From the sequence record MG592456.1: a stretch of 64,000 bases of DNA; one strand, given 5' to 3'. Within the stretch, counting starts at the first letter, position 1. Every line of letters starts with the position of its first letter. A program made the position numbers and the translations under genes. This document shows, in pieces, positions 15,283 through 62,357 of the stretch. Below the pieces are notes generated by a model. The model saw only the letters and a program-made list of their open reading frames with translations. It did not search any database and was not told the DNA's origin.

Positions 15283-15795
15283 TTAATGCGATTCTGATAA
15301 ATTAACTGTTTTCAGCCATTCAGTCCAATTCTTCTTACTACCAATCTTAGTGAACGGTATGTCGTCATTGTCGATCCAAGTCTTCGAACGGTCATAAGCA
15401 CCAGTAACGTCAAATCCATGATAGTCATCACCAACCCAAAGCCACTTGTGGTGCCAAATTGCATTGACTTGACGTGGCTTAGCGACGGCGCCTGTTTGAC
15501 TGTTATACGCAATCATCAATCCAGCGGCTGGTTCTTGAACTAAATCGAATTCTTTCGACTCGTAAAACGCAGTCACGCCCGTCTTGTAGTCAATGCGAAC
15601 AATATTAGCCCTGAACGTTGGATGCTCAATTGATATCGCTGTGCGTGCGAGTGAGCATCGTTCTTTGAACTCTTCTGGGATATAATCGACATGAACGTAT
15701 AGGGAATTAGATATGTCTTTCCCAACTCCCCATTTGCTTCGTTTTATCGCACTACCTTTACGAGTTTTAATAACCGCACGTTCGAAAATAATCAT
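15283..15795 (-). CDS. Hypothetical late protein resembling the accessory (non-methyltransferase) domain of phosphorothioation-associated putative methyltransferases
   Basis: GVGKDISNSLYVH...NIVRI...EFD...EP...IWHHKWLWVGDDY motif order (recognised by eye). Confidence 0.45.
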   Translation of the reverse strand: MIIFERAVIKTRKGSAIKRSKWGVGKDISNSLYVHVDYIPEEFKERCSLARTAISIEHPTFRANIVRIDYKTGVTAFYESKEFDLVQEPAAGLMIAYNSQTGAVAKPRQVNAIWHHKWLWVGDDYHGFDVTGAYDRSKTWIDNDDIPFTKIGSKKNWTEWLKTVNLSESH

Positions 15796-16388
15796 ATTGA
15801 ATGTGACCTTGTGGTGATATTACGAATCATACGACTAGCGTATTCATACTCGCCAATTAGAGCTGACATTGCGGCTTTATCAACGTAGAATGTACTGTCT
15901 TCGATCATGTTTAAATGATTATAAATCTCGCGAAAGTCATGACGATCGTACTCTCTTGCCTGGTTTCTAAGCGCCCCGCCTGCTTTATCATCATCATGCA
16001 CTCGTTTGTATTCGTCAACGACGCGAAGCATTTCAGAGGCGTATTTTTTCATCGCCATGTTATCCATTTTGAGACGTTTCGCTGCCTTTTTGATTTCTTC
16101 GTCAGGTCGCTTCAATTCAATCACGTCCCCTAGCACATTTAAACTGTGAATCGTATCGATTGCAGATTTCTCCATGCGGAGTTTGTGCTGCTCTAGAGAT
16201 TGATTATGCTTACTAAGCTCACCTGATGCTACAGCACCTGCGATAAGACCCGCAAATGCACTCCACCAACCACCTTTAGCTTGCATACGCTTCTTAACTT
16301 CACCCTTTGATCCAGATGTCGCTTTTTTAAATTGAGCCCACTTCCCGCTAATTGATGCGCGATCAGCCTCTGTTAAAAATTCAATCAT
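15792..16388 (-). CDS. Hypothetical late protein, candidate internal head protein
   Basis: Starts MIEFLTEA at ATG 16388 (GGGT RBS); CTAAATA late promoter at 16414-16420 on the minus strand; Gly-rich hydrophobic segment GGWWSAFAGLIAGAVASG. Confidence 0.55.
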   Translation of the reverse strand: MIEFLTEADRASISGKWAQFKKATSGSKGEVKKRMQAKGGWWSAFAGLIAGAVASGELSKHNQSLEQHKLRMEKSAIDTIHSLNVLGDVIELKRPDEEIKKAAKRLKMDNMAMKKYASEMLRVVDEYKRVHDDDKAGGALRNQAREYDRHDFREIYNHLNMIEDSTFYVDKAAMSALIGEYEYASRMIRNITTRSHSI

Positions 16389-16469
16389 GCTTTTACCCCT
16401 TATCTGTTTCATATATTTAGATACAAAAAAGGGCTGGCTAATGCCAACCCTTTAATCTCTCGAATTCGT

Positions 16470-16742
16470 TTAAATGAATTTTTCAATCGGTGATTGCGAC
16501 TCGACGAAGTCAATTCCCTTGAAAATGCAATATGCTTCATGAAAACAGTCTTCCTCACGGTCGACAACAATCTTGACATCATTAAACGTGAACATGATGC
16601 AATCATGTTGCTTAGTTGCCATGTTATACATCGGCTCATGTTGAAATTCTATACCACAAGGCGTTAGCAATACGCGACGAGTTTTTGGTACTTCAACTTG
16701 TGGGACATCGTGCTCGGCAAATGCTTGTTCAAATATATTCAT
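16470..16742 (-). CDS. Hypothetical protein
   Basis: 90 aa ORF with its own sigma70 promoter TAGACA-17-TATGAT (16773-16801, minus strand) and a downstream hairpin terminator at about 16425-16455. Confidence 0.6.
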   Translation of the reverse strand: MNIFEQAFAEHDVPQVEVPKTRRVLLTPCGIEFQHEPMYNMATKQHDCIMFTFNDVKIVVDREEDCFHEAYCIFKGIDFVESQSPIEKFI

Positions 16743-16798
16743 AAAAAGCTCTTAGACTGTTTCGATATAGATATCATAGTCTTTTTTGAGGCGAATGT

Positions 16799-17290
16799 CT
16801 ACCGCTTTCTCCATCTTTTAAGATTATCGTCATATTCGCTATGTTTCCACAAATCAAATACGATGGTACCACTCTGAAACCACCAAACGAGTGAGATTGT
16901 GTCATTCAACTTCGGATCTTTTGGGTTTTTTCCCACATAAAGCTCGGTGCTAGGGTGACTATGATATATTGCCTTTGTGACATGTGTAAATTTATAACCA
17001 CCTTCTGGCTTCCCGAGTTCTTTCGGTGGGTGTAGCTTGCCTTTGTAAGCAACTTCATATACGGTGTTCTTAAACACTATACGCGCAGAATCGATATTAA
17101 ACAGCAAGTTTTGATACTTAGCCGCATTCGGGGCTATCTTCCATTTGAATTTCGGATCCTTTTCTAGCAATTTGTCAATTTCAGGCTCACCCACTAACTT
17201 ACCTAAGTTGTGATTTCCCCATTCCTCATCAAGTGCTAAACTAATCTCAACCCCGAATAGCTGATTTTCATGTTCACTGAACTGAATCAT
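16799..17290 (-). CDS. Hypothetical late protein (weak RelE/YafQ-like C-terminus)
   Basis: 163 aa directly downstream of inh in the same operon; starts MIQFSE. Confidence 0.5.
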   Translation of the reverse strand: MIQFSEHENQLFGVEISLALDEEWGNHNLGKLVGEPEIDKLLEKDPKFKWKIAPNAAKYQNLLFNIDSARIVFKNTVYEVAYKGKLHPPKELGKPEGGYKFTHVTKAIYHSHPSTELYVGKNPKDPKLNDTISLVWWFQSGTIVFDLWKHSEYDDNLKRWRKR

Positions 17291-17292
17291 AA

Positions 17293-17769
17293 TTACCCCA
17301 AAGTAACAAACATATTCTTTGTTGAGTTGTGTATAAGTAACTTACCGTTTCGTTTCACCCAAAACTCAATTGTCTTTAGTACATCAGTGTCACGTCGACC
17401 CAGATGCCACTCAATCAATACAGACTCTGGGAGCGGATGATAACACTCGTCTCCACGACGATAAGTAGGCATCCACAGTGGCTTGAAATCATCTTTTATT
17501 TCAACGACTTCGCTCAGTGTTTGAGCCATTTCAATCACCTCGCGCTTAATCTCATCAGGCGAGTTTTCAAGTTCTACGATTGCATCTAATTCGACAACCA
17601 CAGTTTCAGTGAGTTCTGCTGGCAGCGGTTTAACAGGCGCCTCTTGAAATTCAGATATTTCCGAGATCATTCTGCCTTTAGTCGTGGCACTTAGTTCAAT
17701 GTCGTAATACTCAAGTGCAAATTCAGTGATTTCGCGCTTCGTTAATTTCTTTAGATATTCAGCAATCAT
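17293..17769 (-). CDS. inh: Inh-like paralog 2, at the canonical inh position divergent from uvsW
   Basis: LTKREITEFALEYYDIEL...DDFKPLWMP...IEFWVKRNGKLLIHNSTKNMFVTL; ATGA overlap with the upstream gene. Confidence 0.65.
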   Translation of the reverse strand: MIAEYLKKLTKREITEFALEYYDIELSATTKGRMISEISEFQEAPVKPLPAELTETVVVELDAIVELENSPDEIKREVIEMAQTLSEVVEIKDDFKPLWMPTYRRGDECYHPLPESVLIEWHLGRRDTDVLKTIEFWVKRNGKLLIHNSTKNMFVTLG

Positions 17770-17990
17770 ATTGCCTCCCATTCTACTCTTGTTAAACACA
17801 CCCATACGTTTTCCGTCATATCAACGAAACACACACATTCGGTGTCGATTAAATTCTTTCGTGCTTCTGAATAGTTGTTATTCAGCGCAGGTATCATTTT
17901 TGTATCGAGTGATCCGTTGTAAGTGCGACCGTTCAATTCAAACTTATATAGACCTGCTTTCAGTTTATCTAATAATTCACTTCTTTTCAT
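17766..17990 (-). CDS. Small hypothetical protein (possible Sm/SH3-like WYL_2 domain)
   Basis: ELLDKLKAG...FEL...RTYNGSLD...FVDMTENVWVC pattern. Confidence 0.4.
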   Translation of the reverse strand: MKRSELLDKLKAGLYKFELNGRTYNGSLDTKMIPALNNNYSEARKNLIDTECVCFVDMTENVWVCLTRVEWEAI

Positions 17991-18003
17991 GTTTTCATAC
18001 TCT

Positions 18004-18029
18004 TATAAATACACATATAACATATTTAG
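18004..18029. promoter_or_regulatory. Divergent late promoters (TATAAATA plus strand for uvsW; CTAAATA minus strand for the inh operon)
   Basis: Both motifs lie in the short intergenic gap. Confidence 0.7.
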
Positions 18030-18053
18030 ATGAAATCGCATAGAGAGAAAAAC

Positions 18054-19571
18054 ATGACGGACATTAAAATTGAGTACCATGATGAGAGCTATGCGAGAGT
18101 TGTAGCAGAACCAGCAATCATGCACGAAATGATAGACTACTTCTCATTCCTAACAGACGGGTATAAGTTCAACCCTAAGTTCAAGGCAGGGATTTGGGAC
18201 GGCAAAATTCGATTGATGACATACCAAGGCATGATCCCATATGGGTTAGTTGGGCAATGTCGGTCATTTGCATCAAATATGATGTACACGATTGAAACGG
18301 ACGAGAAACTAGACCCAGTCGAGCGTATAAGTCGTGAAGATTTCGACGCTTGGGTGAAATCACTAGATATTTACTCAGGCAGTACAAAAATCGAGCCACA
18401 TTGGTATCAAGCTGACTCTATTTTCACTGGCATCAATAATCAACATAGCTTGCTTAACTTGCCGACGTCGGCAGGTAAATCTTTGATCCAATCATTGACG
18501 TCTAGGTGGTATCTTGAAAATCACGAGTTGAAAGTGTTGATTATCGTCCCAACGACTGCACTTGTACAACAAATGCGTGATGACTTTTTAGATTATCGCT
18601 TATTTGATCATGACGACATCTATCAGATTCGCGGTGGCGTTGACCGTAATGCAATCGGTGATTGTAGTATTGTAGTTTCAACGTGGCAATCAGCCGTTAA
18701 GCAAGATGCAGAATGGTTCAAGCAGTTTGGTATGTTGATGGTCGATGAATGTCACTTAGCAACGGGCAAGTCGCTCGACGGTATCATCAAGAAGATGACC
18801 AACTGTGAATATAAGCTTGGGTTGACGGGTTCACTTCGAGACGGCAAAGCAAACATTCTGCAATATGTCGGCACATTCGGTGATATTTTCAAACCTGTAT
18901 CGACTGCTCAGTTGATGCAAGAAGGACAAGTCACAGATTTAAAGATCAATTGTCTGATGCTTGAGTACCCGCAACCTCTTAGAGAAGAAATGAAAGGTTG
19001 TTCGTATCCGGAAGAAATGAAATTCCTTCTTGAGAATAAGCACCGCAATCGATATCTGATTAAGTTATCGTATGCTCTGAGCGCTAAGAGAGGCGAGAAC
19101 ACGCTTTTACTGTTCAAGAACATATCACACGGCAAATTGCTTTACGAAGCGCTGTGCAAGATCTACGACCCCGAGAAGGTGTTTTACGTGTCAGGCGAGA
19201 CTAAGACTGATGACCGTACCAAGATTAAGAAACTTGCTGAAGATATTGACGGTGCTATCATCGTTGCGTCATATGGTGTATTCGCAACGGGTATTTCGAT
19301 TAAGAAATTACACAACGTGATTTACGCCCACCCGACAAAATCAAAAATTCTGACGCTTCAGAGCATAGGTCGTGTATTACGTAAGCATGGTAGTAAAGTT
19401 ACCGCGAAATTGTTCGATATCATTGATAATCTAGCAATCAAGCCGAAGCGTAAGAACGCCAAGAAGCCATACACTCATATAAATTACACCATGAATCATG
19501 GTATGGCGCGAATCGAACTTTACAACCAAGAAGAATTTAAGTACTCGGTTAAGAAAGTTGATTTAGCATAG
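18054..19571 (+). CDS. uvsW: UvsW SF2 DNA helicase
   Basis: LPTSAGKS, VDECH, GLTGS, FATGISIKKLHNVI, LQSIGRVLR. Confidence 0.95.
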   Translation: MTDIKIEYHDESYARVVAEPAIMHEMIDYFSFLTDGYKFNPKFKAGIWDGKIRLMTYQGMIPYGLVGQCRSFASNMMYTIETDEKLDPVERISREDFDAWVKSLDIYSGSTKIEPHWYQADSIFTGINNQHSLLNLPTSAGKSLIQSLTSRWYLENHELKVLIIVPTTALVQQMRDDFLDYRLFDHDDIYQIRGGVDRNAIGDCSIVVSTWQSAVKQDAEWFKQFGMLMVDECHLATGKSLDGIIKKMTNCEYKLGLTGSLRDGKANILQYVGTFGDIFKPVSTAQLMQEGQVTDLKINCLMLEYPQPLREEMKGCSYPEEMKFLLENKHRNRYLIKLSYALSAKRGENTLLLFKNISHGKLLYEALCKIYDPEKVFYVSGETKTDDRTKIKKLAEDIDGAIIVASYGVFATGISIKKLHNVIYAHPTKSKILTLQSIGRVLRKHGSKVTAKLFDIIDNLAIKPKRKNAKKPYTHINYTMNHGMARIELYNQEEFKYSVKKVDLA

Positions 19572-19574
19572 ACC

Positions 19575-19602
19575 AAAAAAAAGAGCCGAAAGGCTCTTTT
19601 TT
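19575..19602. terminator. Bidirectional intrinsic terminator
   Basis: A-run GAGCC-gaaa-GGCTC T-run. Confidence 0.85.
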
Positions 19603-19606
19603 GTTT

Positions 19607-19708
19607 TTAGTCGAATATACCTGAGATAATCGCACCCAAGAATTCGATTAATATTTCAAACGGTAGCCACAGCCACTCGAAGAATCCCCGTTTTTTGCGA
19701 TTACTCAT
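19607..19708 (-). CDS. 33-aa membrane peptide (missed by the ORF track)
   Basis: MSNRKKRGFFEWLWLPFEILIEFLGAIISGIFD; last gene of the uvsY operon before the terminator. Confidence 0.55.
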   Translation of the reverse strand: MSNRKKRGFFEWLWLPFEILIEFLGAIISGIFD

Positions 19709-19712
19709 AGGA

Positions 19713-19880
19713 TTAATCGATTAGAAGTTGAGTTTCGTTTAGCTGTTCGCTGCTAGACTCGGTCATTTGCATTTCGGCTAAATGCGATTGACATTGTCCT
19801 GCATGAACAATACCTTGAGGTACGTTGAGGGTAACGTCATCAGCTTTAATTTCTTGTTTACATACTACACATTGTGTCAT
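19713..19880 (-). CDS. uvsY.-2: UvsY.-2 homolog (55 aa)
   Basis: MTQCVVCKQEI...VHAGQC...ESSSEQLNETQLL matches the T4 uvsY.-2 pattern and position. Confidence 0.75.
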   Translation of the reverse strand: MTQCVVCKQEIKADDVTLNVPQGIVHAGQCQSHLAEMQMTESSSEQLNETQLLID

Positions 19881-20044
19881 AGAAAAGTTCCTGTCTTTAT
19901 TACAACTTGAATTAAGTTGTTATTTTCTGCGGTGGCAATTAGTGGCCCGTGAAGTTGCCACCCGTCGTTTAAATATTTAGCAACTTCATTTTCAAGCTCA
20001 TCACGTTCGCGAATATCTTTCATTAAGATTTTGTATTTTGTCAT
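19877..20044 (-). CDS. 55-aa hypothetical protein (DUF1737-like)
   Basis: ELENEVAKYLNDGWQLHGP motif; ATGA coupling to the next gene. Confidence 0.5.
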   Translation of the reverse strand: MTKYKILMKDIRERDELENEVAKYLNDGWQLHGPLIATAENNNLIQVVIKTGTFL

Positions 20045-20046
20045 AA

Positions 20047-20463
20047 TCACAACCCGATTAATTCTTTGAAAATCTTAGTGGCAACGCCACCATCGAATAC
20101 TTTACCCGTACCGCGCAATGCTTGTTGTAGACCACCCATAGCTTTCATGCTATTAGCACCTGATTCCGAAATGAAATCAACAATAATTTCTTTCATTTCT
20201 TCGTCTGTCATTGCTTGCGGGAGTAATTCCGCACATGCACTAGACTCTTGGGTTAATTTCGCAATTAGCTCTTCATCAGTTGCGTGTTCAAGTGCAAGTT
20301 TGTTGCTGTCAATAACACCTTTCAGTGCTTTGATGGCTGCTTGGTCATCATAAATTTGTCGACGATCAAGATCAGCGATAACAACGCCGATGACTGATGA
20401 AATAACTGTGTTTCGTGATTTGCGTGCTGCAAGATGAGCCGCTTTAATTTGGTCGATAATCAT
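20047..20463 (-). CDS. GatB/YqeY-domain protein
   Basis: QIKAAHLAARKSRN...ELLPQAMTDEEMKEII...MKAMGGL...DGGVATKI. Confidence 0.75.
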   Translation of the reverse strand: MIIDQIKAAHLAARKSRNTVISSVIGVVIADLDRRQIYDDQAAIKALKGVIDSNKLALEHATDEELIAKLTQESSACAELLPQAMTDEEMKEIIVDFISESGANSMKAMGGLQQALRGTGKVFDGGVATKIFKELIGL

Positions 20464-20873
20464 ACTATACCACTCTCAATTTTTCTATTATCAATTATGT
20501 GTTTAATTGTGAAGCCCATTTGACTAATGCCTTTCAGTGCCTCTTCAGTGAACGATAAAACGTCCTTCACATGAGTATACAAAGCAATTTGCGTCTGTAA
20601 AGTAGGATCACCCGCAAGTGCAAATTTCATTTCACTCTTTTCAACGATGTAGTCGCAAACCTCGTCATCATGTTTTCCGCTGTAGTACATCCAACGATCC
20701 GTTCGAGTTCGCTCCATTTTTAATTCTGCTTTAAGCAGCAGCTTTCGTGCATCTGCTCGATAACAAAGCCATTTACCGTGTAATACGGGAATGTTAATAG
20801 CTGCTAGCTCAATCTTTGTCGTGTCAATTTTTACGTCTTCTTTGTATTCTCGTTTCAAATCTTCTAGATTCAT
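20460..20873 (-). CDS. uvsY: Recombination mediator UvsY
   Basis: MNLEDLKREYKEDVKID...LHGKWL...WMYYSGK...GFTIKHIIDNRKIESG. Confidence 0.9.
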   Translation of the reverse strand: MNLEDLKREYKEDVKIDTTKIELAAINIPVLHGKWLCYRADARKLLLKAELKMERTRTDRWMYYSGKHDDEVCDYIVEKSEMKFALAGDPTLQTQIALYTHVKDVLSFTEEALKGISQMGFTIKHIIDNRKIESGIV

Positions 20874-20892
20874 ATGTACCTCGCTGATGTGA

Positions 20893-20921
20893 AGTATATA
20901 TACTCATCGGCATTATGTAAA
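20893..20921 (-). promoter_or_regulatory. Sigma70-type promoter TTTACA-17-TATACT for uvsY
   Basis: Near-consensus elements with 17-bp spacing. Confidence 0.75.
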
Positions 20922-20932
20922 CATCAATTTCT

Positions 20933-20986
20933 CTAATATTTCTAATTTCACTAAGAATACTAAAATCACTAATTCAACTAAGATGA
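20933..20986. repeat. Six phased 9-bp repeats (CTAAnnnnn), iteron-like
   Basis: CTAA begins at 20933, 20942, 20951, 20960, 20969 and 20978. Confidence 0.85.
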
Positions 20987-21043
20987 GACGGAATTTTTCC
21001 GCCTCGGATTATCCTGCCGCTTCGCTTGGTTTCTTCTAGACAT

Positions 21044-36839: not shown

Positions 36840-36847
36840 TATAAATA
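36840..36847 (+). promoter_or_regulatory. Late promoter TATAAATA for the 36873 gene
   Basis: Exact consensus, 25 bp before the ATG, AGGA RBS. Confidence 0.8.
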
Positions 36848-36872: not shown

Positions 36873-37526
36873 ATGTATAGTTTTTCTGAATTCATAAATC
36901 TTGCGGAATCGGATTACATGGGCTCACATCGAGCCCCGGGGCCACCGCACGCCGCACGACTTGATGACTTGACTAAAGGGGATTTCAGCTACCCAGACGA
37001 TATCTACGGCCCTGACGCCACACGATACTATGCCACCGGGTCTAGTCGTGCGGACTCTGAAAGTATGGCAGTTATCCGCGCATCGCGAGATTCACCGAAC
37101 TCAAAGGTTGTGATATATCGAGCAGTTCCAGATTACGACCATGATGTTCGCTCGGAGTTGAAGAAAATCAATTCTTATATTTCATCATATAATCGTTATG
37201 GGTTCTTCGATGATGATGATTATATGGACTCGCTGTACAATAAGTTTGTTAGCGAGTTGGGTCAACGACATATTGCCGTTCAGGATGCAATGATTGCATA
37301 CTTGAATGACAAAAGTGATGAATTGTCATCGAACATGAATAGTGAGAAGCTTACAATCAATTCAGGGGATTGGGTTTCTCTTAGCAAATCATATGCGATC
37401 GAGCATGGTCGAAGTAACCTCGACGGAAAGTACAAAATCATCCAAAAAAAGGTTTATGTCAAGGAACTATTCACTGACGGTGACTCGATTAATGAGTTCG
37501 GTTGGTGGAAAGGCGGTCGACGTTAA
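36873..37526 (+). CDS. Putative ADP-ribosyltransferase-fold protein with a capsid-targeting-like leader
   Basis: MYSFSEFINLAES leader; IYRAVP / GDWVSLSKSYA / SINEFG in R-S-E order. Confidence 0.45.
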   Translation: MYSFSEFINLAESDYMGSHRAPGPPHAARLDDLTKGDFSYPDDIYGPDATRYYATGSSRADSESMAVIRASRDSPNSKVVIYRAVPDYDHDVRSELKKINSYISSYNRYGFFDDDDYMDSLYNKFVSELGQRHIAVQDAMIAYLNDKSDELSSNMNSEKLTINSGDWVSLSKSYAIEHGRSNLDGKYKIIQKKVYVKELFTDGDSINEFGWWKGGRR

Positions 37527-38662: not shown

Positions 38663-39253
38663 ATGTACATTAAAACAATTTCTAAAAAGCAAGTTGCAAA
38701 GCCAGTCGAGCTTAAAAGTGGCTCTCTTGTTCGAGTATACGTCCGGGGCCAACAATATCTCGCTGGGTTATTTGTGTGGAATGGCGCATCGAATTCTAGT
38801 GTGATTTATGACATTGTCAACGATACGGCATGGGTCATAGACACCGCAACGTGTAGACTTATGTCGCATGACGTCGAGATCCCGTACACTCGATTTGAAG
38901 AACAGCTTACTTGTTCTGAGCTATACACAGACGAGAAAACAAACAATCTGATGTATAACTCTGATGAAGTTGAAGAGGTAGTTGTGTATGAGCCACTAAA
39001 GCGCGGTGATGTGATACCCGTAGAATTAAATTTCAACCCTGTGAACGCGATTGTTCTGCACGCATCGAAGCAACACTTGGCAATTGTTGCAGACGGCACC
39101 CCATTCGTATTCAATGTCATAGACGTACGATGCGGTCGTTTTTGCAATGTAGATGATCGCCCACTGGGAGGCATTCTTAAACAATGTAGTCTTCCAGCGA
39201 ACATCGTCGTTAATAAAGAGAATCAATCCACGAGTGAATTACAAGACAATTAA
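38663..39253 (+). CDS. Hypothetical protein
   Basis: 196 aa, GAGG RBS. Confidence 0.6.
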   Translation: MYIKTISKKQVAKPVELKSGSLVRVYVRGQQYLAGLFVWNGASNSSVIYDIVNDTAWVIDTATCRLMSHDVEIPYTRFEEQLTCSELYTDEKTNNLMYNSDEVEEVVVYEPLKRGDVIPVELNFNPVNAIVLHASKQHLAIVADGTPFVFNVIDVRCGRFCNVDDRPLGGILKQCSLPANIVVNKENQSTSELQDN

Positions 39254-39707
39254 TGAATGTGATTTAGCCAATGGCGAAGGTGTTCGATTGAGCATCTTCG
39301 TTTCGGGCTGCAATCACGAATGTGCGGGCTGCTACAATGAATCGACGTGGGACGTGAGCGATGGTATCGAATTCACATCAAACACGCTTAGAGACGTTCT
39401 AGTGAGCTTAGAAGCGCACGACGGGCTGTCTTTATCAGGCGGCGATCCCTTACACCCAGCAAACCGCGAAACAATCTTGAATATCTGCAAATCAGCTAAA
39501 GAAAAATATCCCGAAAAGGACATTTGGCTGTGGAGTGGGTACAAATTGAGTTCTGTTTATCATTTAGAGATTATGAATTATATTGATGTCTTCATCGACG
39601 GTCGATATAAGCGTCATCAGCCGACCATGAAAGCATGGCGTGGTAGTGATAATCAGATCATGTATACTAAAGTCGATGGTGAATTGGTGAATCATGATAA
39701 GAAATGA
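39234..39707 (+). CDS. nrdG: Anaerobic RNR activase (radical SAM)
   Basis: GTG start giving MNYKTINECDLANGEGVR; CNHECAGC; SGGDPL; IDGRY; WRGSDNQ. Confidence 0.95.
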   Translation: MNYKTINECDLANGEGVRLSIFVSGCNHECAGCYNESTWDVSDGIEFTSNTLRDVLVSLEAHDGLSLSGGDPLHPANRETILNICKSAKEKYPEKDIWLWSGYKLSSVYHLEIMNYIDVFIDGRYKRHQPTMKAWRGSDNQIMYTKVDGELVNHDKK

Positions 39708-41341: not shown

Positions 41342-42178
41342 ATGGCTATTAAAGACAAACTGGAAGAGTTGATTGGAACGATTCGCAGTTGCAGTACTAA
41401 AGATGGTGTAGCAGAAATTGAAAAGCTGTATGCACAAAAGAAAAAGGAGTTAGGTGCAAACATTACTCCCATGATGGACATTCGTGTTCGTGATGCAATT
41501 CGTGGTAGACATACTCAGTTTGATAATGAAGCTGCTGAAGCCAAAGAAATGGCGAAAATGAAAAAGCAAGAAGATGATGCCAACGCGATTGCCGCTAAAA
41601 TGGAATCTGGGTTATTCGTCACTAGTGAGAAAGAATTTTTCTTACATGAGACCGTTCTTGATGCATGTGCGATTGATGCGGCATGTATCATGGAGGTTTC
41701 TGCGGATATTCCAACCAATGGTCATATAGAGTTGTATAAGACTCTCTCAGAAGCGGCTGTTCATGTTGGCGCGACGGCTAAGATGATTATACCTCCGTCA
41801 CGCAATCGCGTGCTGAGTGATGCAGATCGCGTTCGTATGTTCGAATCCATGAGCAATGTTGATGTTGAAACAAAATGCGTGATGTTTGCTGAGGTGGAGA
41901 GAATGATCGCGCGGGGTCAAACTCGTGTATTTGCATTAGTCGAATCTGAGAAGATTGCGGAATATCGTCGTCTAGGTCAGCATTTCTTGCGTGTTGGTGG
42001 GCTTCGTTTCGAGATCGTTGAAGTTAAGAACAAAATCCCATCTAGTGTCGTCGAGCAATTCATTGCTAATGATGATCTAGATTCGTTTATGAAAAACGTG
42101 TCGCTTCCGATGCAAGAAGCTGAACGTATGTTCGATCGTCACCTTGAAGTTCTGATGGAGTCAGGTCATGTCAACTAA
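41342..42178 (+). CDS. UvsW.1-like domain fused to a degenerate HIGH-family (cytidylyltransferase-like) domain
   Basis: IRSCSTKDGVAEIEKLY...DIRVRDAIRG matches T4 UvsW.1 IASCQTLEGLEELEAYY...DISVRDALAG; PTNGHIELY HIGH-like motif. Confidence 0.55.
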   Translation: MAIKDKLEELIGTIRSCSTKDGVAEIEKLYAQKKKELGANITPMMDIRVRDAIRGRHTQFDNEAAEAKEMAKMKKQEDDANAIAAKMESGLFVTSEKEFFLHETVLDACAIDAACIMEVSADIPTNGHIELYKTLSEAAVHVGATAKMIIPPSRNRVLSDADRVRMFESMSNVDVETKCVMFAEVERMIARGQTRVFALVESEKIAEYRRLGQHFLRVGGLRFEIVEVKNKIPSSVVEQFIANDDLDSFMKNVSLPMQEAERMFDRHLEVLMESGHVN

Positions 42179-42647
42179 AACTATTCCAAAGCGTGGTGCT
42201 GATGGGTTCTACGCTCTTCGATTGACTCGTCTCCTACATCTTGAATTCAAGCGCTGGGAAGCGTTTAAGTTGGGAATTATCGACGATAAAGGCAATCTTC
42301 TACGTAAAGCAGAAACGCCTAAAGAAAAGAGCAACTGGACAATGTTTCATATCACAGTGCGTAATATCAAACGCCTTGTGCATTTGAATCCAGTTGGCGC
42401 ACAAATTTTAAATCACGGCGCATCGTACTTGTTGCTGATTGAACTTGCTAAAGAATACGATTTGGGTGATTCATTTGCTCAATCTGTATTTGACTTACAA
42501 GAGGAAATGGTTGCAGGTGATGCGGGCGGTGATCCCGAAATGATTGCCAAAGGCGAAACATCTGGTGCTATAACTGGCCCGGGACCAAAGGTTCTTGGTA
42601 AAAAGAAAAAGAAAAAGAAGCTGAAGAAATTCAGACACTTCGACTAA
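42168..42647 (+). CDS. Conserved T4-like hypothetical protein with a C-terminal 61.1-like motif
   Basis: WEAFKLGIIDDKGNLLRK; EEMVAGDAGGDP...SGAITGPGP; precedes primase. Confidence 0.55.
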   Translation: MSTKTIPKRGADGFYALRLTRLLHLEFKRWEAFKLGIIDDKGNLLRKAETPKEKSNWTMFHITVRNIKRLVHLNPVGAQILNHGASYLLLIELAKEYDLGDSFAQSVFDLQEEMVAGDAGGDPEMIAKGETSGAITGPGPKVLGKKKKKKKLKKFRHFD

Positions 42648-42651
42648 AAAT

Positions 42652-42676
42652 TGCCCCGATTTAGGGGCATTTTTTT
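42652..42676 (+). terminator. Intrinsic terminator
   Basis: TGCCCC-gattta-GGGGCA T-run. Confidence 0.8.
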
Positions 42677-42724
42677 GTTTATAATTCGTGAATTCGTGTC
42701 AAAATACGTCACGGAGGATATATT

Positions 42725-43783
42725 ATGAAAATATTAATTGATATACAGTACGCCAAGATGCTCCAACATCGACTGTTGCTACCGAAAGTACACAGTAATC
42801 GACCGTTCAAAATCAATGCACGCTGTCCTGTATGTGGTGACTCAAAGAAGAACAAATTCAAGACGCGATTCTGGATTAACGAAGTCAAAGCGAAAGGTGG
42901 CGAAGTTCATCTGCGCTGTTCATGCTGGAACTGCAATTTGAACGTATCTTTGTATCAGTTCTTACAAGACCATGAACCGGGATTATTCGCGCAATATCGA
43001 GTTGATTTATTCAAAGAAAACAACTCTCGTGAGCGAAAAGAACGCACACCAGAACCCGTCGTCGAGAAAAAAGAAGCTGTCGTGATTGAAAAGGAAGCTG
43101 AGACACAGCTATTTCATAATATAACAGCGTTGAAAGACGATCATGTCATGCACAAGTACCTCGAAATGCGTAAAATCCCGAAAGACAAGTGGCACTTGCT
43201 TGGGTTTACTCGTGGCTGGACTAACATGGCTAAGTCACTGCGCCCCGATTTGTATGAAGGTGAGATTAGACACGATCATCCGCGACTTGTAATACCGATT
43301 TACAACAAAAACGGGCTAGTTGCAGTGCAAGGTAGGGCACTTACAAATAAACACGCTCAACGCTATATGACGATTAAAATCGACGATGATTTCAATAAGA
43401 TTTATGGTACGGAACGCATCAACGAAGACGACCCAGTTATTTTCGTAGAGGGTCCGATTGATAGTTTATTCCTATACAATTGCTGTGCTATAGTAGGCGG
43501 ACAAGTTAGCCCGAAGAACGCACCGTACGCTGGTAACAGAATATGGGCGCTAGATAGAGAGCCATTTCATCCGGATACCGTCAAACGTATGCATACGTTG
43601 ATTAAAGCGGGTGAGCGAATAGTAATATGGGATAGACTCCCGTCAGATTTGAATAACGCGAAAGATATAAATGATTTCGTAAAGGCGGGTTATACTCCTG
43701 AGTTTATCCAGAAGTATATTTATGATAATGCGGTTTCCGGGATGGCGGCTACGCTTCGATTAAATCGATGGGCTCGCGTATAG
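42725..43783 (+). CDS. 61: DNA primase
   Basis: CPVCGDS...CWNC Zn finger, RLVIPI, VQGRAL, FVEGPIDSLFL TOPRIM. Confidence 0.95.
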   Translation: MKILIDIQYAKMLQHRLLLPKVHSNRPFKINARCPVCGDSKKNKFKTRFWINEVKAKGGEVHLRCSCWNCNLNVSLYQFLQDHEPGLFAQYRVDLFKENNSRERKERTPEPVVEKKEAVVIEKEAETQLFHNITALKDDHVMHKYLEMRKIPKDKWHLLGFTRGWTNMAKSLRPDLYEGEIRHDHPRLVIPIYNKNGLVAVQGRALTNKHAQRYMTIKIDDDFNKIYGTERINEDDPVIFVEGPIDSLFLYNCCAIVGGQVSPKNAPYAGNRIWALDREPFHPDTVKRMHTLIKAGERIVIWDRLPSDLNNAKDINDFVKAGYTPEFIQKYIYDNAVSGMAATLRLNRWARV

Positions 43784-56611: not shown

Positions 56612-56612
56612 T

Positions 56613-56649: not shown

Positions 56650-56678
56650 ACAGCTTAAATTAACTATGAGAATAATAT

Positions 56679-57272
56679 ATGACAGATGTTAAACCAACAA
56701 TCATTTTAGATGTCGACGGTGTGCTTATTGATTGGGCATGTCAACTTCCGTTTTTCTGTAAAAAGGCGGGCATTGATCCTGTTCACGTATTGAAGCATTA
56801 CACTGCGCCAGTTCACGTCGATCCTTGTGAACTATTCGGCATTCCAGACGCAAACCTTGCATACGATTTGATGGATCGATATAACTTGCAGCATGGTAAG
56901 TTTATGACTGCGTACCCAGATGCAGTCGACGAAATTCACAAGATTGCACGCGATTACAATCTAATTGCATTGACGAAATTCGGTGTTACGACCGAGCACT
57001 GGATGACTCGAAAGTTCAACCTAGACACATTCTTCCCAAATTGCTTCAGCGAATTGATTACAATCGGATTTGACGCTTCGAAAGTTGGGTATGTTCGTAA
57101 ATTGTCGACGAATCATGATGTGGTTGCATTCGTTGACGATCAGATTGAAAACACAGACCTAATTTCCAACGCATTCGCCAACTCCGAAATGAAAGTGGTT
57201 CACTTGAATCGATATGATGCACGAGCGGATGTGAATCACATGAGCAAGCTAGTTGAATTCATTAAAGGATAG
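56679..57272 (+). CDS. 30.2: HAD-superfamily phosphatase (T4 gp30.2-like)
   Basis: PTIILDVDGVL, FVDDQ; near DNA ligase as in T4. Confidence 0.8.
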   Translation: MTDVKPTIILDVDGVLIDWACQLPFFCKKAGIDPVHVLKHYTAPVHVDPCELFGIPDANLAYDLMDRYNLQHGKFMTAYPDAVDEIHKIARDYNLIALTKFGVTTEHWMTRKFNLDTFFPNCFSELITIGFDASKVGYVRKLSTNHDVVAFVDDQIENTDLISNAFANSEMKVVHLNRYDARADVNHMSKLVEFIKG

Positions 57273-57337
57273 TGTTTAACAGATAGTAATCTCGTAATAT
57301 AATAAGCTCCTACGGGGGCTTTTTTTATGGTTCAAAT

Positions 57338-57637
57338 ATGATAAAGAAAATATATGTTGTTCATGCTGATAGTGCTATTGCAAAACGTGCAGTATTACTT
57401 GATAGGCGTGAAGCTAAAGGCAAAACACTATTCGCAAACACTGCTGAATGGGAAGCTGAACTGAAAACAGATTGGCAAGAATGGAATAAAGAAATGTGTG
57501 ACTTTATAACTCACATCTACGGTGATCACATCGCCGGTAAGATGTTTAACGTCACAATAGTTAATGGCAATGTACATTATGAGGAATCGGATGTTTGCTA
57601 TACTAATGAAAAACAACCAAGAAGTGGCGATTATTGA
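57338..57637 (+). CDS. Hypothetical protein
   Basis: 99 aa after a hairpin terminator at about 57304-57327. Confidence 0.55.
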   Translation: MIKKIYVVHADSAIAKRAVLLDRREAKGKTLFANTAEWEAELKTDWQEWNKEMCDFITHIYGDHIAGKMFNVTIVNGNVHYEESDVCYTNEKQPRSGDY

Positions 57638-57791
57638 TCTTGGTGATGTAATCATGCCTGCATTGTACGCCAAAAAGGATGATGCAATGCAAGTACTATA
57701 TAAAAACGACTTGCAAGATCGGTGCTTTGTTGCATCAGTTCGAGCAGAAATACATATTGAGGGTAATAATGATACTACAGATTCTGAATAA
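57564..57791 (+). CDS. Hypothetical protein
   Basis: 75 aa, overlaps neighbours; start uncertain. Confidence 0.45.
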   Translation: MAMYIMRNRMFAILMKNNQEVAIIDLGDVIMPALYAKKDDAMQVLYKNDLQDRCFVASVRAEIHIEGNNDTTDSE

Positions 57792-59109
57792 ACTCGGTGA
57801 TACATCGAAACGTAATGCGAAAATTGACATTCTGAAAGGCGAAGTTGATAATGAATTGCTCAAGCGAGTGTTTCAATTAGCATACACCCCGCAGTTTAGA
57901 TTCAACATGAAGAAACTGCCGACCGTAGGACGCGGTTCGACTATCAATGAATATAGCTATACGACTCTGAGCATTGCGCTTGAATCGATTTACCAAACAC
58001 TAGTGGTGAAACAGCTTCGCGGTCATGATGCACAAGCATTCGTTGAACGCACGTTCATGGAAGTGTCTGAGAGTGATGAAGAAGTGTTACGACGTGTAAT
58101 CTCGAAAGACTTGCGCACGGGCTGTACGGGTGGTACAGCTAACAAAATCTGGAAAGGTTTGATACCAGAACAGCCTCAAATGCTAGCTAGTTCGTATAAA
58201 GATAAGCTCGTTGACGCTATCTTGAAAGCACTCGCATACGCTGAACTGAAAGCTGATGGTGCTCGTTGTTTTGCTCACGTCAATCTTGATGGTGAAATCT
58301 CAATGACATCGCGCAACGGTAACCCATATCTGGGTCTGACTCGTGTTGAGCAGGCGCTTCATTCGATGCAAGTTCAAGGCTTCGTCGTCGATGGTGAGTT
58401 AGTATACGCACCGAATGGCTTGAATGAAGTCAAAGACCGTAGCACTGGCAATGGCATTGTGAACAAAGCTGGTAAAGGTACGATTACAGTCGACGAGCAA
58501 GCGGGAATTGTCTTTCAAGTATGGGATATCATCCCAGAAGACGTTTATTTCGGTGTTTCTAATGACATGAACATGCCGTATTCAAAGCGTAAACAGATTC
58601 TAGCTGATGTTGCTCAAGTTGCACGTGGCGTTATCGAGCCAATACCGTGGGCGACTGTGTCGACTAAAGAACAAGCCTCTGAAATCTACAATCAGTATGT
58701 AGCAATGGGACTTGAAGGCATTATCTTGAAAGACCCGACTGCATTGTGGGAAAACAAGCGAAGCAAGTCATTAGTCAAGTACAAAGAAGTGCATGACGGT
58801 GATCTTGAAATCATTGATGTGCTTGAGGGTGACAAGAAGAACAAAGGTCGAATGGGCGCGTTATTGCTCCGTTCACGTTGTGGTCTGCTTATCACTAAGT
58901 GTGGATCTGGGTTCTCAGACGAACAACGCATTGAAATGTGGGAAAGACGTGAAGAATTGATTGGAATGATCGTCGAAATCAATTACAATGCAATTACGAA
59001 AGGTCGAAACAAAGACACATGGTCTTGTTTCTTGCCTATTTTCGTTCAAATTCGCGACGATAAAGACGTTGCTAACTTGCTCGAAGAAATGTCTGGTTTT
59101 AAGGGGTAA
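57769..59109 (+). CDS. 30: ATP-dependent DNA ligase
   Basis: ELKADGAR (KxDG), VDGEL, EGIILK, KYK, CGSGFSD, FLPIF. Confidence 0.96.
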   Translation: MILQILNKLGDTSKRNAKIDILKGEVDNELLKRVFQLAYTPQFRFNMKKLPTVGRGSTINEYSYTTLSIALESIYQTLVVKQLRGHDAQAFVERTFMEVSESDEEVLRRVISKDLRTGCTGGTANKIWKGLIPEQPQMLASSYKDKLVDAILKALAYAELKADGARCFAHVNLDGEISMTSRNGNPYLGLTRVEQALHSMQVQGFVVDGELVYAPNGLNEVKDRSTGNGIVNKAGKGTITVDEQAGIVFQVWDIIPEDVYFGVSNDMNMPYSKRKQILADVAQVARGVIEPIPWATVSTKEQASEIYNQYVAMGLEGIILKDPTALWENKRSKSLVKYKEVHDGDLEIIDVLEGDKKNKGRMGALLLRSRCGLLITKCGSGFSDEQRIEMWERREELIGMIVEINYNAITKGRNKDTWSCFLPIFVQIRDDKDVANLLEEMSGFKG

Positions 59110-59112
59110 CTC

Positions 59113-59649
59113 ATGCACAAGATCGAATCTGTACACGCTGACGTTGGGGTTTTCAATGGCCAAGTCGCTTTTCAAGTTGACGGTCGCCTACTGTTAATTG
59201 AGGTTTGTACACCAACCTTCAATGACTACAACGAGTGGCGATTAACTAATTTAAGAATCGCTTCAGGGAAGTACGACCCGAGTCAAAATGATGTTGAACT
59301 GACTCCGTATGACATTCCTGAATACATAATCGATCAAGACGAGCTTGATTTTCTCGACAAATGGTTCCCGACTAAGATGGTAGCCTTGAGCGATCTAGAA
59401 TCCCAATCAAGTCCGCATCATTATCTCGGTTATGAACAACTGGTCAGTGTTAATTATGACGAGGGGTTCAAACATCTAGTAAACCGACCTGAATTATGGC
59501 GTGAAGAGCTAGACAGTTTCGATACGGACGAAAACTCGTGGGTTCTAGCTAAAGACTTCCAGCGCCGAAAATTGCACGAGCCGCAAGGCATGTACTCGCT
59601 GTTAATCTTCATGGCAGAACACATACGCGCAAATTACTACAAGAAATAA
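59113..59649 (+). CDS. Hypothetical protein
   Basis: 178 aa. Confidence 0.6.
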   Translation: MHKIESVHADVGVFNGQVAFQVDGRLLLIEVCTPTFNDYNEWRLTNLRIASGKYDPSQNDVELTPYDIPEYIIDQDELDFLDKWFPTKMVALSDLESQSSPHHYLGYEQLVSVNYDEGFKHLVNRPELWREELDSFDTDENSWVLAKDFQRRKLHEPQGMYSLLIFMAEHIRANYYKK

Positions 59650-59651
59650 AC

Positions 59652-59691
59652 AAAAGGGTTGACTTCGGTCAACCCTTTTTTCGTATAAATA
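59652..59691 (+). promoter_or_regulatory. Terminator hairpin immediately followed by late promoter TATAAATA (59684-59691)
   Basis: AAAAGGGTTGAC-ttcg-GTCAACCCTTTT then TATAAATA. Confidence 0.75.
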
Positions 59692-59713
59692 TGTTCATTT
59701 ATAGAGAACAATT

Positions 59714-60601
59714 ATGATTGTATTTGAACCTTTTCAACTCGACGAGTCATTAGACCGAGCTGCTCCGTATAAATGGGGTGGTGGTAGCGCGGCAAGATTT
59801 GAAGTGAATGGCACGAAGTATCAAGTCGAGTTCAGTCAGCGGGATGGTATTACTTATGATGAGGTCGGGAGAGATTTGACTACACTCGACGTTGCGTTTC
59901 GCTGGCTTGACCCAGAAATGGAACGATATTCGTATGCATTGAAGAAAGACAGCACACCGCGAGAATCGATGACTGTTTTGGCTACTGTGCTAGCAGCGAC
60001 GTTTGAGAAAGCAGATAAAACAAAACCAGATTTGATTACGTTCAGTGCGTTTTCTGATACTGATGGACGTGACGCGAAGAAACGTTTTGATTTGTATAAT
60101 AGAATGGCTATCAAATATGGCAAGCAGAAAGGCTATACCGTACATACTCGCGGCAGAAACTTTATCCTTGTAAATGACAAGCCCGTCGCAAAAGCGCAAA
60201 GGCGACTTGCCAACGATGGTGTGTTACATGACGAGGAACTAACGTATGTCGAATTCTCTCAGTGTAATGCATATACGTGGGCTAAGATATTTGATGTGAA
60301 AGAGGGCAAGGTGGCAAGGATTAATCTACCACATGGTTGGTTTATCATAGACCGAACCAGTGATGAAATTGATATTATGGTAGGTGGATCTGGCGGGTCA
60401 CATCAAACACTGGATAACTCTAGTATTTGGCGCGACATGATGGTACCGACAAATGTTCAGAACGGCACCAGAGAGTTTGAGATTGAAGAATATCACGCAG
60501 TTTTAGCTGATGGTCGAGTGTTGATGTGTGGGTTCACGACGTTTTATATTCTTCCGCATATGGAATCAGTGAAAGAGATTTGGGGTAACGTGCAGATATA
60601 A
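59714..60601 (+). CDS. Hypothetical late protein, candidate internal head protein
   Basis: MIVFEPFQLDES leader; late promoter; convergent with alt. Confidence 0.55.
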   Translation: MIVFEPFQLDESLDRAAPYKWGGGSAARFEVNGTKYQVEFSQRDGITYDEVGRDLTTLDVAFRWLDPEMERYSYALKKDSTPRESMTVLATVLAATFEKADKTKPDLITFSAFSDTDGRDAKKRFDLYNRMAIKYGKQKGYTVHTRGRNFILVNDKPVAKAQRRLANDGVLHDEELTYVEFSQCNAYTWAKIFDVKEGKVARINLPHGWFIIDRTSDEIDIMVGGSGGSHQTLDNSSIWRDMMVPTNVQNGTREFEIEEYHAVLADGRVLMCGFTTFYILPHMESVKEIWGNVQI

Positions 60602-60629
60602 AAAAAGGGAGCTAATTAGCTCCCTTTTT
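60601..60629. terminator. Bidirectional intrinsic terminator
   Basis: A-run GGGAGCT-aatt-AGCTCCC T-run. Confidence 0.85.
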
Positions 60630-60641
60630 CAGGTCTATCGT

Positions 60642-62357
60642 TTATGGTGTAAGTCGTGAATGTTGCTTCATTTCAATCTCGATTGGCAAATCTACTTCAG
60701 CAAGTCGCATGATAGTTGCAACTGAATCGAGTTCTTCGAGGCGTTCGGTCTTAGCATGAAGAGATATAATACTTTCATTGTAAGCCCCTGCATCGCGCAC
60801 TGTCAGACGAATAATACAATCACGAGACTCTGGATCCAATTGAATCACATCTGCGTCAAATACCGTGTTACGATTGATGATCATTTCACATTCATGTGGG
60901 TTACCGTGCTTACCGGGTATTAGAACCGGTAATCCCGTTGGCTCTATGATGAAAATCACAGAAAGTGCATTAATCCCCGCAAGTGCATCATACATTTCAG
61001 ACGATCCAACACCCGCTTTCATGATAGAAACACTGCTTCCGCCAGCAAATTCAGTTGCAACAGACGGGTCCATTGAAGCACTCATATATGCCGTTGATGC
61101 AAACAACTTACTGCGTATGATTTTACGCAGATCATCACCACCAATATCTGCACCGCGATACAAAAGAGGTGCGGGGGTCATGTTGTCAAGTGTGATGCCA
61201 CCCTGACTAAAGGCTTCGTCTAATGAGTCAACGAGTGATCTTGCACGATCATCGCCATCGCCCGTCAACAACAATTCATTAATTTCAGTAAATGAAGATC
61301 CGGTGTATTGAGCAATCGCTGCTTGAACTTTAGGTGACATGCCCGCCCAGTAATCTTTTTGCATCAATGACATTGAAATGGCGTCGTATTGCTTGCCAAC
61401 AATTTTCGAATTCGACGCAATCAAATTCGTGCATACCTGTTGCACGTGCGTACGAACCGTTTGTCCATTGGAAAGATGTACATTTTCCAAGTACGGTGCC
61501 ATCGTTGCACTCATTTCCTCAAGTGATAAATTAGAACCGGCTGCTACAGCCGCTGCTTGTGTGAATTCGCGTGCTGCTACCTGTTGATACGAAGTTCGCA
61601 TTGTCATATTGTGACTCATCGATTCCAAACGATTCTTTGCTGGATTCATAAGTGGTGGCGTAACTGCTGGAATGTGCAACGAATTCGCGGTAACACGTTT
61701 CGCTGGCTTTTCTTCCATCCATTCAGCTTTCACGTCATCGTGATATTCCTCGAAGCCCGGGGTCATGTCAGCCGTTACTATAATCGTTTTCTTGCTTGCG
61801 ACGTCTACTTCGAGCGCCATTTTAGCGGCAAGTTGATAAAGCGTATCAGCTTCGATTTCTAGCAGCTTATTAGTATTAAACCCCGGTCGTGTGATAACAA
61901 AGAAACTGTAGTCTTCAGCCATTGACGTTTCACCGTCGTTTGTAATTTGTGTAGTTTCGCACCCAAGACGCAATTTTTTAAATAGTGTTTTGATACGCAT
62001 ATCGAACATTTTACCTGTACCCTTGCGCTGAATACGCATAGACACAGCATTGGCACGAGTTTTCAACATGAAATCTTGAACAACCTTGACGATTGTTTCT
62101 TGGAATTTCTGTGGGTTCTTAGTTTCGCGTATAGTAATGCCGCCTTTCTTGCCGCGCATTGCTGATACAGTACAGAACCAAGCACGTTTACCGCGATTCG
62201 CTACGTCTGATTTTGTTTTATTCGTGAACGTAACGACCACATCCCTTGATTCGCCGTTCATGTCGACAACAAAGAACTTGTTTTCTTTCGTCGAGCGAGC
62301 CGGATAGTAATCGTAGGTATCGCCCATGCTTTCATTTAGTTGTTGAAATCCAATCAT
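60642..62357 (-). CDS. alt: Alt-like ADP-ribosyltransferase (R-S-E clade, VIP2-like C-terminus)
   Basis: AIAQYTGSSFTEIN, LLYRG, STAYMSAS, HECEMII; start MIGFQQLNES at ATG 62357; CATAAATA late-promoter variant upstream. Confidence 0.8.
   Translation of the reverse strand: MIGFQQLNESMGDTYDYYPARSTKENKFFVVDMNGESRDVVVTFTNKTKSDVANRGKRAWFCTVSAMRGKKGGITIRETKNPQKFQETIVKVVQDFMLKTRANAVSMRIQRKGTGKMFDMRIKTLFKKLRLGCETTQITNDGETSMAEDYSFFVITRPGFNTNKLLEIEADTLYQLAAKMALEVDVASKKTIIVTADMTPGFEEYHDDVKAEWMEEKPAKRVTANSLHIPAVTPPLMNPAKNRLESMSHNMTMRTSYQQVAAREFTQAAAVAAGSNLSLEEMSATMAPYLENVHLSNGQTVRTHVQQVCTNLIASNSKIVGKQYDAISMSLMQKDYWAGMSPKVQAAIAQYTGSSFTEINELLLTGDGDDRARSLVDSLDEAFSQGGITLDNMTPAPLLYRGADIGGDDLRKIIRSKLFASTAYMSASMDPSVATEFAGGSSVSIMKAGVGSSEMYDALAGINALSVIFIIEPTGLPVLIPGKHGNPHECEMIINRNTVFDADVIQLDPESRDCIIRLTVRDAGAYNESIISLHAKTERLEELDSVATIMRLAEVDLPIEIEMKQHSRLTP

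Follow-up and report, generated by a model that had tools for sequence, protein, structure and literature searches.

Late genes sharing a T4-style N-terminal leader in a KVP40-like Vibrio phage as candidates for head packaging

Results

Six late genes with similar starts

Vibrio phage 1.081.O._10N.286.52.C2 is a KVP40-like T4-type phage of the genus Schizotequatrovirus, with a genome of 239,318 bp (MG592456.1). The window analyzed here is the whole stretch of bases 1-64000 of this record; its major capsid gene agrees with the record in position and at 100% identity. An initial annotation of the window had singled out six open reading frames (ORFs) that start alike and had read their N-termini as leaders that target proteins into the phage head. 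The coordinates of all six match GenBank coding sequences (CDSs), and the quoted N-termini are correct. The six are NVP1081O_017 (15792-16388, minus strand), which starts MIEFLTEA; NVP1081O_016 (15283-15795, minus), MIIFERA; NVP1081O_019 (16799-17290, minus), MIQFSE; NVP1081O_040 (36873-37526, plus), MYSFSEFINLAES; NVP1081O_083 (59714-60601, plus), MIVFEPFQLDES; and NVP1081O_084 (60642-62357, minus), MIGFQQLNES. They are called by their numbers below.

All six were confirmed to lie behind a late-type promoter or in a late operon. For 040, an exact TATAAATA is found at 36840-36847 (plus), 33 nt upstream of the start. For 083, a terminator-like hairpin with a T-run is followed by an exact TATAAATA (the module spans 59653-59691, plus; the promoter at 59684-59691 precedes the start by 30 nt), and this arrangement is kept in KVP40, nt-1, F86 and K567. 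The promoter of 084 is CATAAATA at 62390-62397 (minus), 40 nt upstream of the start, and it is conserved at alt of KVP40, nt-1, K567 and F86. The 017-016 operon also has a hairpin with a T-run and then a promoter, CTAAATAT (module 16413-16452, minus; promoter 16413-16420, 32 nt upstream of 017). Hairpin and CTAAATA are kept there in nt-1, K567 and V09, and D479 has CATAAATA at this place. Because the 016 start overlaps the 017 stop, 016 was assigned to the 017 operon. Another CTAAATAT (18022-18029, minus) precedes the 021-020-019 operon, 39 nt upstream of 021, and is kept in nt-1 at the corresponding start.

In the whole genome, 18 of 21 TATAAATA copies lie 15-80 nt upstream of a start (16 times the expectation), and so do 12 of 31 CTAAATA copies (7 times the expectation). 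This positional enrichment, the presence of CTAAATA also upstream of the tail tube and tail fibre genes, and the conservation of each variant at the same position in relatives make the variant late-type promoters look credible.

The leader is enriched among late-promoter genes

We defined the leader as M-[IVLY]-x-F, followed by hydrophobic-x-Glu with the Glu by residue 16. Simple gene calls over the whole 239-kb genome gave 381 genes, whose starts agreed with the annotation in 75 of 81 cases in the window. The leader was found in seven of the 381. Of these genes, six have a late-type promoter immediately upstream; the remaining one encodes portal gp20. The initial annotation had suggested a genome-wide test of leader enrichment among late-promoter genes. 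We ran it, and the leader was enriched: under the extended promoter definition, 6 of 32 late-promoter genes carried it, against 1 of 349 others (Fisher p = 1.5e-6), and the counts were 3 of 18 versus 4 of 363 when only exact TATAAATA was accepted (p = 0.0028). Both p-values are optimistic, because the motif was refined on the window after the data were seen. At internal Met positions, the pattern frequency was 0.25%.

Two of the matches lie outside the window, and both are behind late promoters, for which the base rate is 8%. NVP1081O_121 (347 aa) starts with MIIFENVQSQAAIEQ and has the promoter CTAAATAC. Its orthologues start MII[FI]E[NS]V, all with CTAAATA, and like alt, the gene runs opposite to the genes on either side. 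NVP1081O_317 (109 aa) starts with MIEFNNVALHES behind TATAAATA; it is basic and has no family match.

The leaders are 7-14 residues long, in the range of the short propeptides of T4-type internal proteins, which have 6-19 residues. Each ends at a hydrophobic-x-Glu site that is kept in orthologues (017, L-T-E; 040, L-A-E; 083, L-D-E; 084, L-N-E; 317, L-H-E; 121, A-I-E/I-F-E). All members have Phe at position 4. At position 7, 040 and 083 have F, 084 has L, 017 has E, and both 121 and 317 have V. Thus 040, 083 and 084 have F4, then F7 or L7, and then L-x-E. Outside the leader, 084, 040, 017, 121 and 317 have no detectable mutual similarity.

Leader and late promoter are jointly conserved in KVP40, nt-1, K567/K566, F86, V09 and D479. 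Orthologues of 084, 017 and 121 are 70-100% identical over the first 10 residues, whereas overall identity is 38-73%. The leader codons of these genes vary synonymously (ATT/ATA, TTT/TTC, GAA/GAG, TTA/CTA/TTG) while the peptide is unchanged. Leader identity above overall identity, despite synonymous codon changes, indicated that selection acts on the leader peptide.

NVP1081O_084 is an Alt-type ADP-ribosyltransferase

The product of 084 (571 aa) has the leader MIGFQQLNE, followed by S. It matched PF03496 with 29.5 bits (cut-off 23.4) and phrog_802 at 1.4e-56. The LYRG, SAS and E-C-E motifs are present and align with those of Alt relatives. The protein is thus an ADP-ribosyltransferase (ART) of the Alt/VIP2 type, and the initial annotation had listed it as Alt. 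It is predicted to ADP-ribosylate host proteins. The gene adjoins the DNA ligase gene region, here and in relatives, and alt likewise lies beside gene 30 in Aeh1 and Kimel, which is the T4-like context.

Orthologues of 084 start MIG[FY]Q[QE]L[NT]E, all with CATAAATA, and the first 10 residues are 70-80% identical versus 50% overall. Alt relatives in three other T4-type genera also have 6-10 residue leaders ending in [I/L/M]-T-E: MELITE in the T4-like coliphage KMB23, MSIKEMLMTE in Aeh1 and MLETLTE in Acinetobacter phage Kimel. The latter two lie behind CTAAATA and CATAAATA, respectively.

Two side observations concern Alt orthologues. At the E-C-E site of 084, KVP40 has D-C-D and nt-1 has D-C-E, indicating that the catalytic glutamates are not uniformly kept in the genus. 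For F86 Alt (4402-6138, minus), the annotated start precedes the conserved MIGF by 16 codons and overlaps the CATAAATA promoter that is conserved there; judging from this overlap, the start is probably mis-called.

The fold of NVP1081O_040 matches modules of large phage proteins

The product of 040 (217 aa) consists of the leader MYSFSEFINLAE, then S, then a domain that also occurs in large multidomain phage proteins. It had no match in Pfam, NCBIfam or PHROG and no significant one in the PDB, the last searched by sequence and by fold. Its AlphaFold 2 model had a predicted local distance difference test score (pLDDT) of 91. In a Foldseek search against BFVD, 13 matches passed E ≤ 0.001; the best had E of 1.1e-18, TMq was 0.46-0.63, and the matched proteins were 129-1475 aa long. 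Matches with E of 1e-18 to 1e-6 were to modules in phage proteins of 276-1475 aa, so that the fold lies within large multidomain phage proteins, as expected of a polyvalent module. One match is named as a large-polyvalent-protein-associated domain protein. According to PMC9503650, polyvalent proteins are embedded in the virion and likely to be injected.

About 20 metagenomic homologues of 040, of about 200 aa, have leaders of similar style (10-26 residues; for example MKTFKEFLIEKED and MISFIKFIKLLEND) ahead of an invariant Tyr. One of the homologues lies between gp4-like and gp2 genes on a T4-type contig. A non-T4-type phage of 34.7 kb encodes a homologue whose leader is replaced by a 110-residue extension. 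A TATAAATA shortly upstream of the 040 homologue in contig L013 was considered as its promoter and rejected, as it is too close to the start.

NVP1081O_083 is predicted to have a disordered leader ahead of a conserved fold

The product of 083 (295 aa, phrog_6387) has the leader MIVFEPFQLDE, followed by S. Its N-domain is related to DUF6934, and its C-domain is beta-rich without known relative. In the AlphaFold 2 model (pLDDT 86), residues 1-12 scored below 50, indicating disorder, and the fold begins after them. Sequence and fold searches against the PDB gave no significant match; weak matches were acetyltransferase-like and RNase E DNase-I-domain-like (E > 0.05). Orthologues in KVP40, nt-1, F86 and K567 are 39-46% identical overall, and all start MI[IV]FE. 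Next comes a linker that varies in length and ends in hydrophobic-x-E-[AS] just ahead of a conserved [FL]-x-R-x-A-P-Y-K-W. The K567 orthologue has no linker, and AFSRP follows MIIFE directly.

A word-indexed protein search gave only one relative of 083, and a close-relative scan of IMG/VR gave no match. The others were found by tblastn against phage genomes and by an exhaustive HMMER search. In the latter, P0060 (2180 aa, fibronectin repeats) was a spurious match and was discarded. The repeat protein P0064 is on a 7-kb contig with no annotated neighbours. The genome also encodes two paralogues, 128 and 130 (genome positions 92666-93613 and 93906-94745, plus), which start MKFS..., have no late promoter and lie in an early-looking gene block. 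These two share an L-x-E-A / D-R-A-A boundary. Late 083 copies are distinguished by the MIIFE prefix.

017, 016 and 019 lie beside a prohead protease inhibitor gene

The product of 017 (198 aa, phrog_16422) is basic (pI 9.5), and its leader MIEFLTE is followed by A. All five orthologues examined start MIEF[LI]TE. Identity is 67-73% in close relatives and 38% in D479. The start resembles those of the phage's own gp68 (MKFITE, then A) and of Kimel Alt (MLETLTE, then A).

The other two are weak candidates. The product of 016 is basic. At 170 aa it is a short form, as is that of D479 (175 aa), and both are without the C-terminal domain of the orthologues in nt-1, K567 and V09 (306-325 aa). The D479 form starts MIEFIAE. 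The C-half of the 016 orthologues (phrog_16075) resembles the 083 N-domain. The product of 019 (163 aa) is also basic. Its orthologues start M-x-x-F-[SN]-E-[HY]-E-N and are 77-81% identical to it overall, but share just 5-6 of its first 10 residues. Pfam and NCBIfam searches gave no family match for 017, 016 or 019.

Between 019 and 021 lies NVP1081O_020 (17293-17769, minus), which encodes an Inh-like prohead protease inhibitor (phrog_8608 at 2.6e-38). NVP1081O_018 (16470-16742, minus) starts MNIFEQAFAE and was considered as a further member. It was excluded, because in its orthologues position 4 is L instead of F and the upstream promoters are of the TTGACA type; the caveat that the initial annotation had attached to this gene was thus correct.

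The phage encodes the T4-type protease and prohead core

A head maturation protease of the gp21 type is encoded at 7163-7801 (plus; phrog_207 at 1.1e-75) and is the presumed processing enzyme. Its N-terminus contains L-I-E with E as residue 9, and T4 gp21 has likewise been reported with LIE-9 (PMC9026906). The protease gene lies among the prohead core genes gp67, gp68 and gp22 (6517-8681, plus), which matched phrog_14217 (prohead), phrog_14114 and phrog_237 (head scaffolding). The protease and core that a T4-type system requires are thus encoded, and the portal gene is also in the window. The start of gp68 is MKFITEA, as the initial annotation had given it. The core proteins gp67, gp68 and gp22 are the presumed docking partners of the leaders.

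Enzyme and membrane labels of the proposed cargo

Besides Alt, the initial annotation had given the six proteins labels that our searches did not bear out. It had listed a second ART-like protein, and neither 040 nor 083 has detectable ART homology by sequence, profile or fold. Pfam, NCBIfam and PHROG gave no ART match for these two. An alignment of the 040 family with the Alt family by hhalign had a probability of 0.3%, and 040 was rejected as an ART. The PDB fold searches with 040 and 083 had no match of any kind at E ≤ 0.001, and both cholera toxin A1 and SdeA came up only at E > 1, with TM scores of about 0.2-0.3. A phosphorothioation-associated domain and a RelE-like protein had also been proposed, and for neither was a match found with 016, 017, 019, 040 or 083 in Pfam, NCBIfam or PHROG. 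The supposed Gly-rich membrane segment is a Gly/Ala-rich stretch of 017 that is weakly hydrophobic. Its 19-residue Kyte-Doolittle maximum is 1.03, which is below transmembrane-helix grade.

An ART-related gene was seen elsewhere in the genome. NVP1081O_291 (genome 177475-178602, plus; 17475-18602 in L005) is a PARP-like member of the ART superfamily, its PF00644 score of 25 bits being just under the cut-off. Upstream of it lie a hairpin and a CTAAATAT promoter, and it starts with MKNLNQFMEELQLNE, without M-I-x-F and with Glu-containing sites. From these features, 291 could be another late or packaged enzyme.

Discussion

Comparison with T4 internal proteins and Alt

Internal proteins and Alt of T4 enter the prohead core through N-terminal targeting propeptides of 10-19 residues, in which residues 4 and 7 serve targeting and residues 8 and 10 serve processing (PMC9026906). 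Processing of T4 Alt removes six residues at ITE-6 and a further 63 at LTE-619 (PMC5694885). The T-even internal proteins are diverse and share only the targeting sequence (PMC3012670).

The leader proteins of Vibrio phage 1.081.O are similar to T4 IPI, IPII and IPIII (Mullaney and Black 1996, summarised in PMC9026906 and PMC3012670) in having a short putative N-terminal propeptide, an aromatic residue at position 4, in 040, 083 and 084 a hydrophobic or aromatic one at 7, and hydrophobic-x-Glu. They are also alike in predicted late expression, in dispersed and variable candidate cargo, and in the presence of a phage gp21-type protease and a gp22/67/68 core. Three differences were found. The mature parts have no sequence relation to those of T4; the leader has a genus-specific form, M-I-x-F; and several cargo proteins are acidic and 217-571 aa long, whereas the T4 proteins are small and basic.

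For 084, the likeness to T4 Alt includes the Alt/VIP2 ART family (PF03496, phrog_802), the ligase-adjacent position, the late promoter and the short hydrophobic-x-Glu leader. The leader has 9 residues (L-N-E) and that of T4 Alt has 6. The N-terminal two thirds of 084 are weakly similar to coliphage Alt, and tblastn covers residues ~340-500 only. The fold of 040 matches single modules within large polyvalent proteins of phages and conjugative elements (Iyer et al. 2017, PMC5512222; summarised in PMC9503650), which are predicted to travel in the virion and to act in early infection. A difference is that polyvalent proteins are multidomain, whereas 040 is a stand-alone module with a T4-style leader and no named Pfam domain.

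Proposed packaging route

We propose that the known T4 mechanism of capsid targeting and gp21-type processing applies to a set of lineage-specific late proteins in KVP40-like phages, and give this a probability of roughly 0.6. Each gene would be transcribed late from a TATAAATA, CATAAATA or CTAAATA promoter, as predicted from the promoter sequences. By analogy with T4, the N-terminal propeptide M-I-x-F ... hydrophobic-x-Glu would bind the gp22/gp67/gp68 core during prohead assembly. The gp21-type protease (7163-7801) would then cut after the Glu and free the mature protein within the head. As for T4 Alt and the T4 internal proteins, the cargo would leave with the DNA at the next infection. The core of this proposal fits because the leaders and promoters are conserved, the gp21 and core genes are encoded, Alt relatives have leaders of their own, and residues 1-12 of 083 are modelled as disordered.

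The most likely members are 084, 083, 040 and 017, together with 121 and 317 outside the window. Possible members are 016 and 019, which may alternatively be prohead-core or morphogenetic proteins. We are more confident of the T4-type reading for 084, and less so for 016 and 019. The members, being separate late genes whose products would share a packaging route, do not make up a single system. What stands of the initial annotation is thus a probable group of late proteins with a T4-style leader, one of them Alt. Its cargo labels do not stand, and its "mostly undescribed effector system" was overstated, since sets of varied internal proteins with nothing but the targeting sequence in common are well established for T-even phages (PMC3012670, PMC9026906). 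Novelty is confined to the particular cargo, the principle being known already.

Several points weigh against the proposed route. The leader motif was sharpened after inspection of the data, and portal gp20 fits it. Position 7 of 017 is E, which is not hydrophobic. Orthologues of 016 start M-x-[IL]-I-F-E-R-A, with F shifted to position 5. In VH7D, a 040 homologue begins like the leader proteins, with MKTYTEFLSE, and lies directly behind regA without a late promoter. In the 083 family, the L-x-E-A-[FM]-D boundary is also present in the non-late paralogues 128 and 130, and in multidomain metagenomic relatives each internal repeat begins [LIV]-x-E-A-[FL]-D-x-P-Y-P-Y-x-W. Since it occurs in non-late paralogues and internal repeats, the L-x-E-[AS] of this family may be a fold element rather than a cleavage site. 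In the literature searched, no virion, N-terminal or expression data were found for Vibrio phage 1.081.O or any KVP40-like phage.

Alternative explanations

The most serious alternative concerns 017, 016 and 019. They could be prohead-core or morphogenetic parts like gp67, gp68 and Inh, which are needed or consumed in head assembly and are not injected. This was suggested by their position beside inh in the head-gene neighbourhood and by the good conservation of 017 and 019 (67-73% in close relatives and 77-81%, respectively, against 39-51% for 083, 084 and 121). It also agrees with the gp68-like start of 017 and with all three being basic and without enzyme-family match. However, T4 internal proteins are likewise basic and without enzyme signatures, and 017 falls to 38% identity in D479. 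We consider such a role less likely than not, although it deserves more weight than the other alternatives.

The similarity could also be inherited, either as a promoter-leader cassette or through paralogues spread by duplication or recombination, with L-x-E-[AS] of 083 being the first element of the domain. The two 083 paralogues in the genome, the resemblance of the C-half of 016 orthologues to the 083 N-domain, and the L-x-E-[AS] element in the internal repeats of the 083 family are in line with this. In addition, hairpin-promoter modules precede 017, 083 and 291, and recombination at such modules has been described for KVP40 and nt-1 (PMC4122927). Yet 084, 040, 017, 121 and 317 are dissimilar beyond the leader, so far as can be detected. 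Cassette spread is moreover thought to diversify T-even internal-protein loci too, which makes it compatible with packaging rather than a competitor. As a replacement for it, common inheritance appears improbable. Least probable is that the shared start is an expression feature, in which AT-rich codons (ATG ATT ATT TTT GAA) aid late translation and the Glu sites are incidental. The leader codons are indeed AT-rich, every member is a late gene, and their ribosome-binding contexts are alike. But most late genes, including highly expressed structural ones, have no such start, the synonymous changes preserve the peptide and so point to selection on amino acids, and the leader ends at hydrophobic-x-Glu just ahead of a conserved fold.

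Implications

The T4 class of head-delivered proteins includes a restriction inhibitor and a modifier of host RNA polymerase. If the leader marks head cargo, leader plus late promoter would give a cheap, sequence-based way to list which proteins are delivered along with the DNA of KVP40-type phages. Candidates for host takeover or counter-defence could be picked out on that basis in this large and ecologically important group of marine phages, and the orphan domain of the 040 family would be tied to the virion-delivered "polyvalent protein" repertoire. The gain would be in annotation and candidate discovery, not in a new mechanism, because the principle is textbook T4 biology.

Tentatively, and with somewhat less than even odds, a larger, largely uncharted set of head-packaged and processed proteins may exist in KVP40-type phages and in many uncultured T4-type phages of marine and fresh waters. 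It would be recognisable by a lineage-specific leader plus late promoter and would include the 040 and 083 families. More speculatively, 083-family proteins with tandem repeats may be polyproteins that a prohead protease cuts at each [LIV]-x-E-A boundary.

Other observations on the genome

A GC-rich hairpin with a T-run stands directly before a late-type promoter at three late genes: at 59653-59691 (plus), at 16413-16452 (minus), and at about 17400-17450 of L005, upstream of 291. Similar to the PeSLs of T4-type phages (PMC4122927), the hairpin abuts a promoter before variable genes and is conserved across KVP40-type genomes. A difference is that the promoter is late-type and the hairpin precedes it.

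An Inh-like paralogue of 020, NVP1081O_013 (13063-13611, plus; phrog_8608 at 6.6e-49), has its own TATAAATA promoter. The two are 27% identical to each other. Three late-promoter genes at genome positions 153404-157876 (plus; 41404-41982, 42068-43306 and 45349-45876 in L004) share the N-terminus MALP-x-SG...AA[LM]IN-x-ELGR, a second and different type of start. CDS 045, which encodes a 4Fe-4S domain protein of 101 aa from a GTG start at 39402, is nested in an ORF of 184 aa with an ATG start (39153-39707, plus), and its annotated start may be too far downstream. In the record itself, the phage is named as a Vibrio phage and the listed host is Shewanella. Non-coding RNA features labelled "CRISPR spacer" lie within rIIB and a tail gene, and they look like annotation artefacts.

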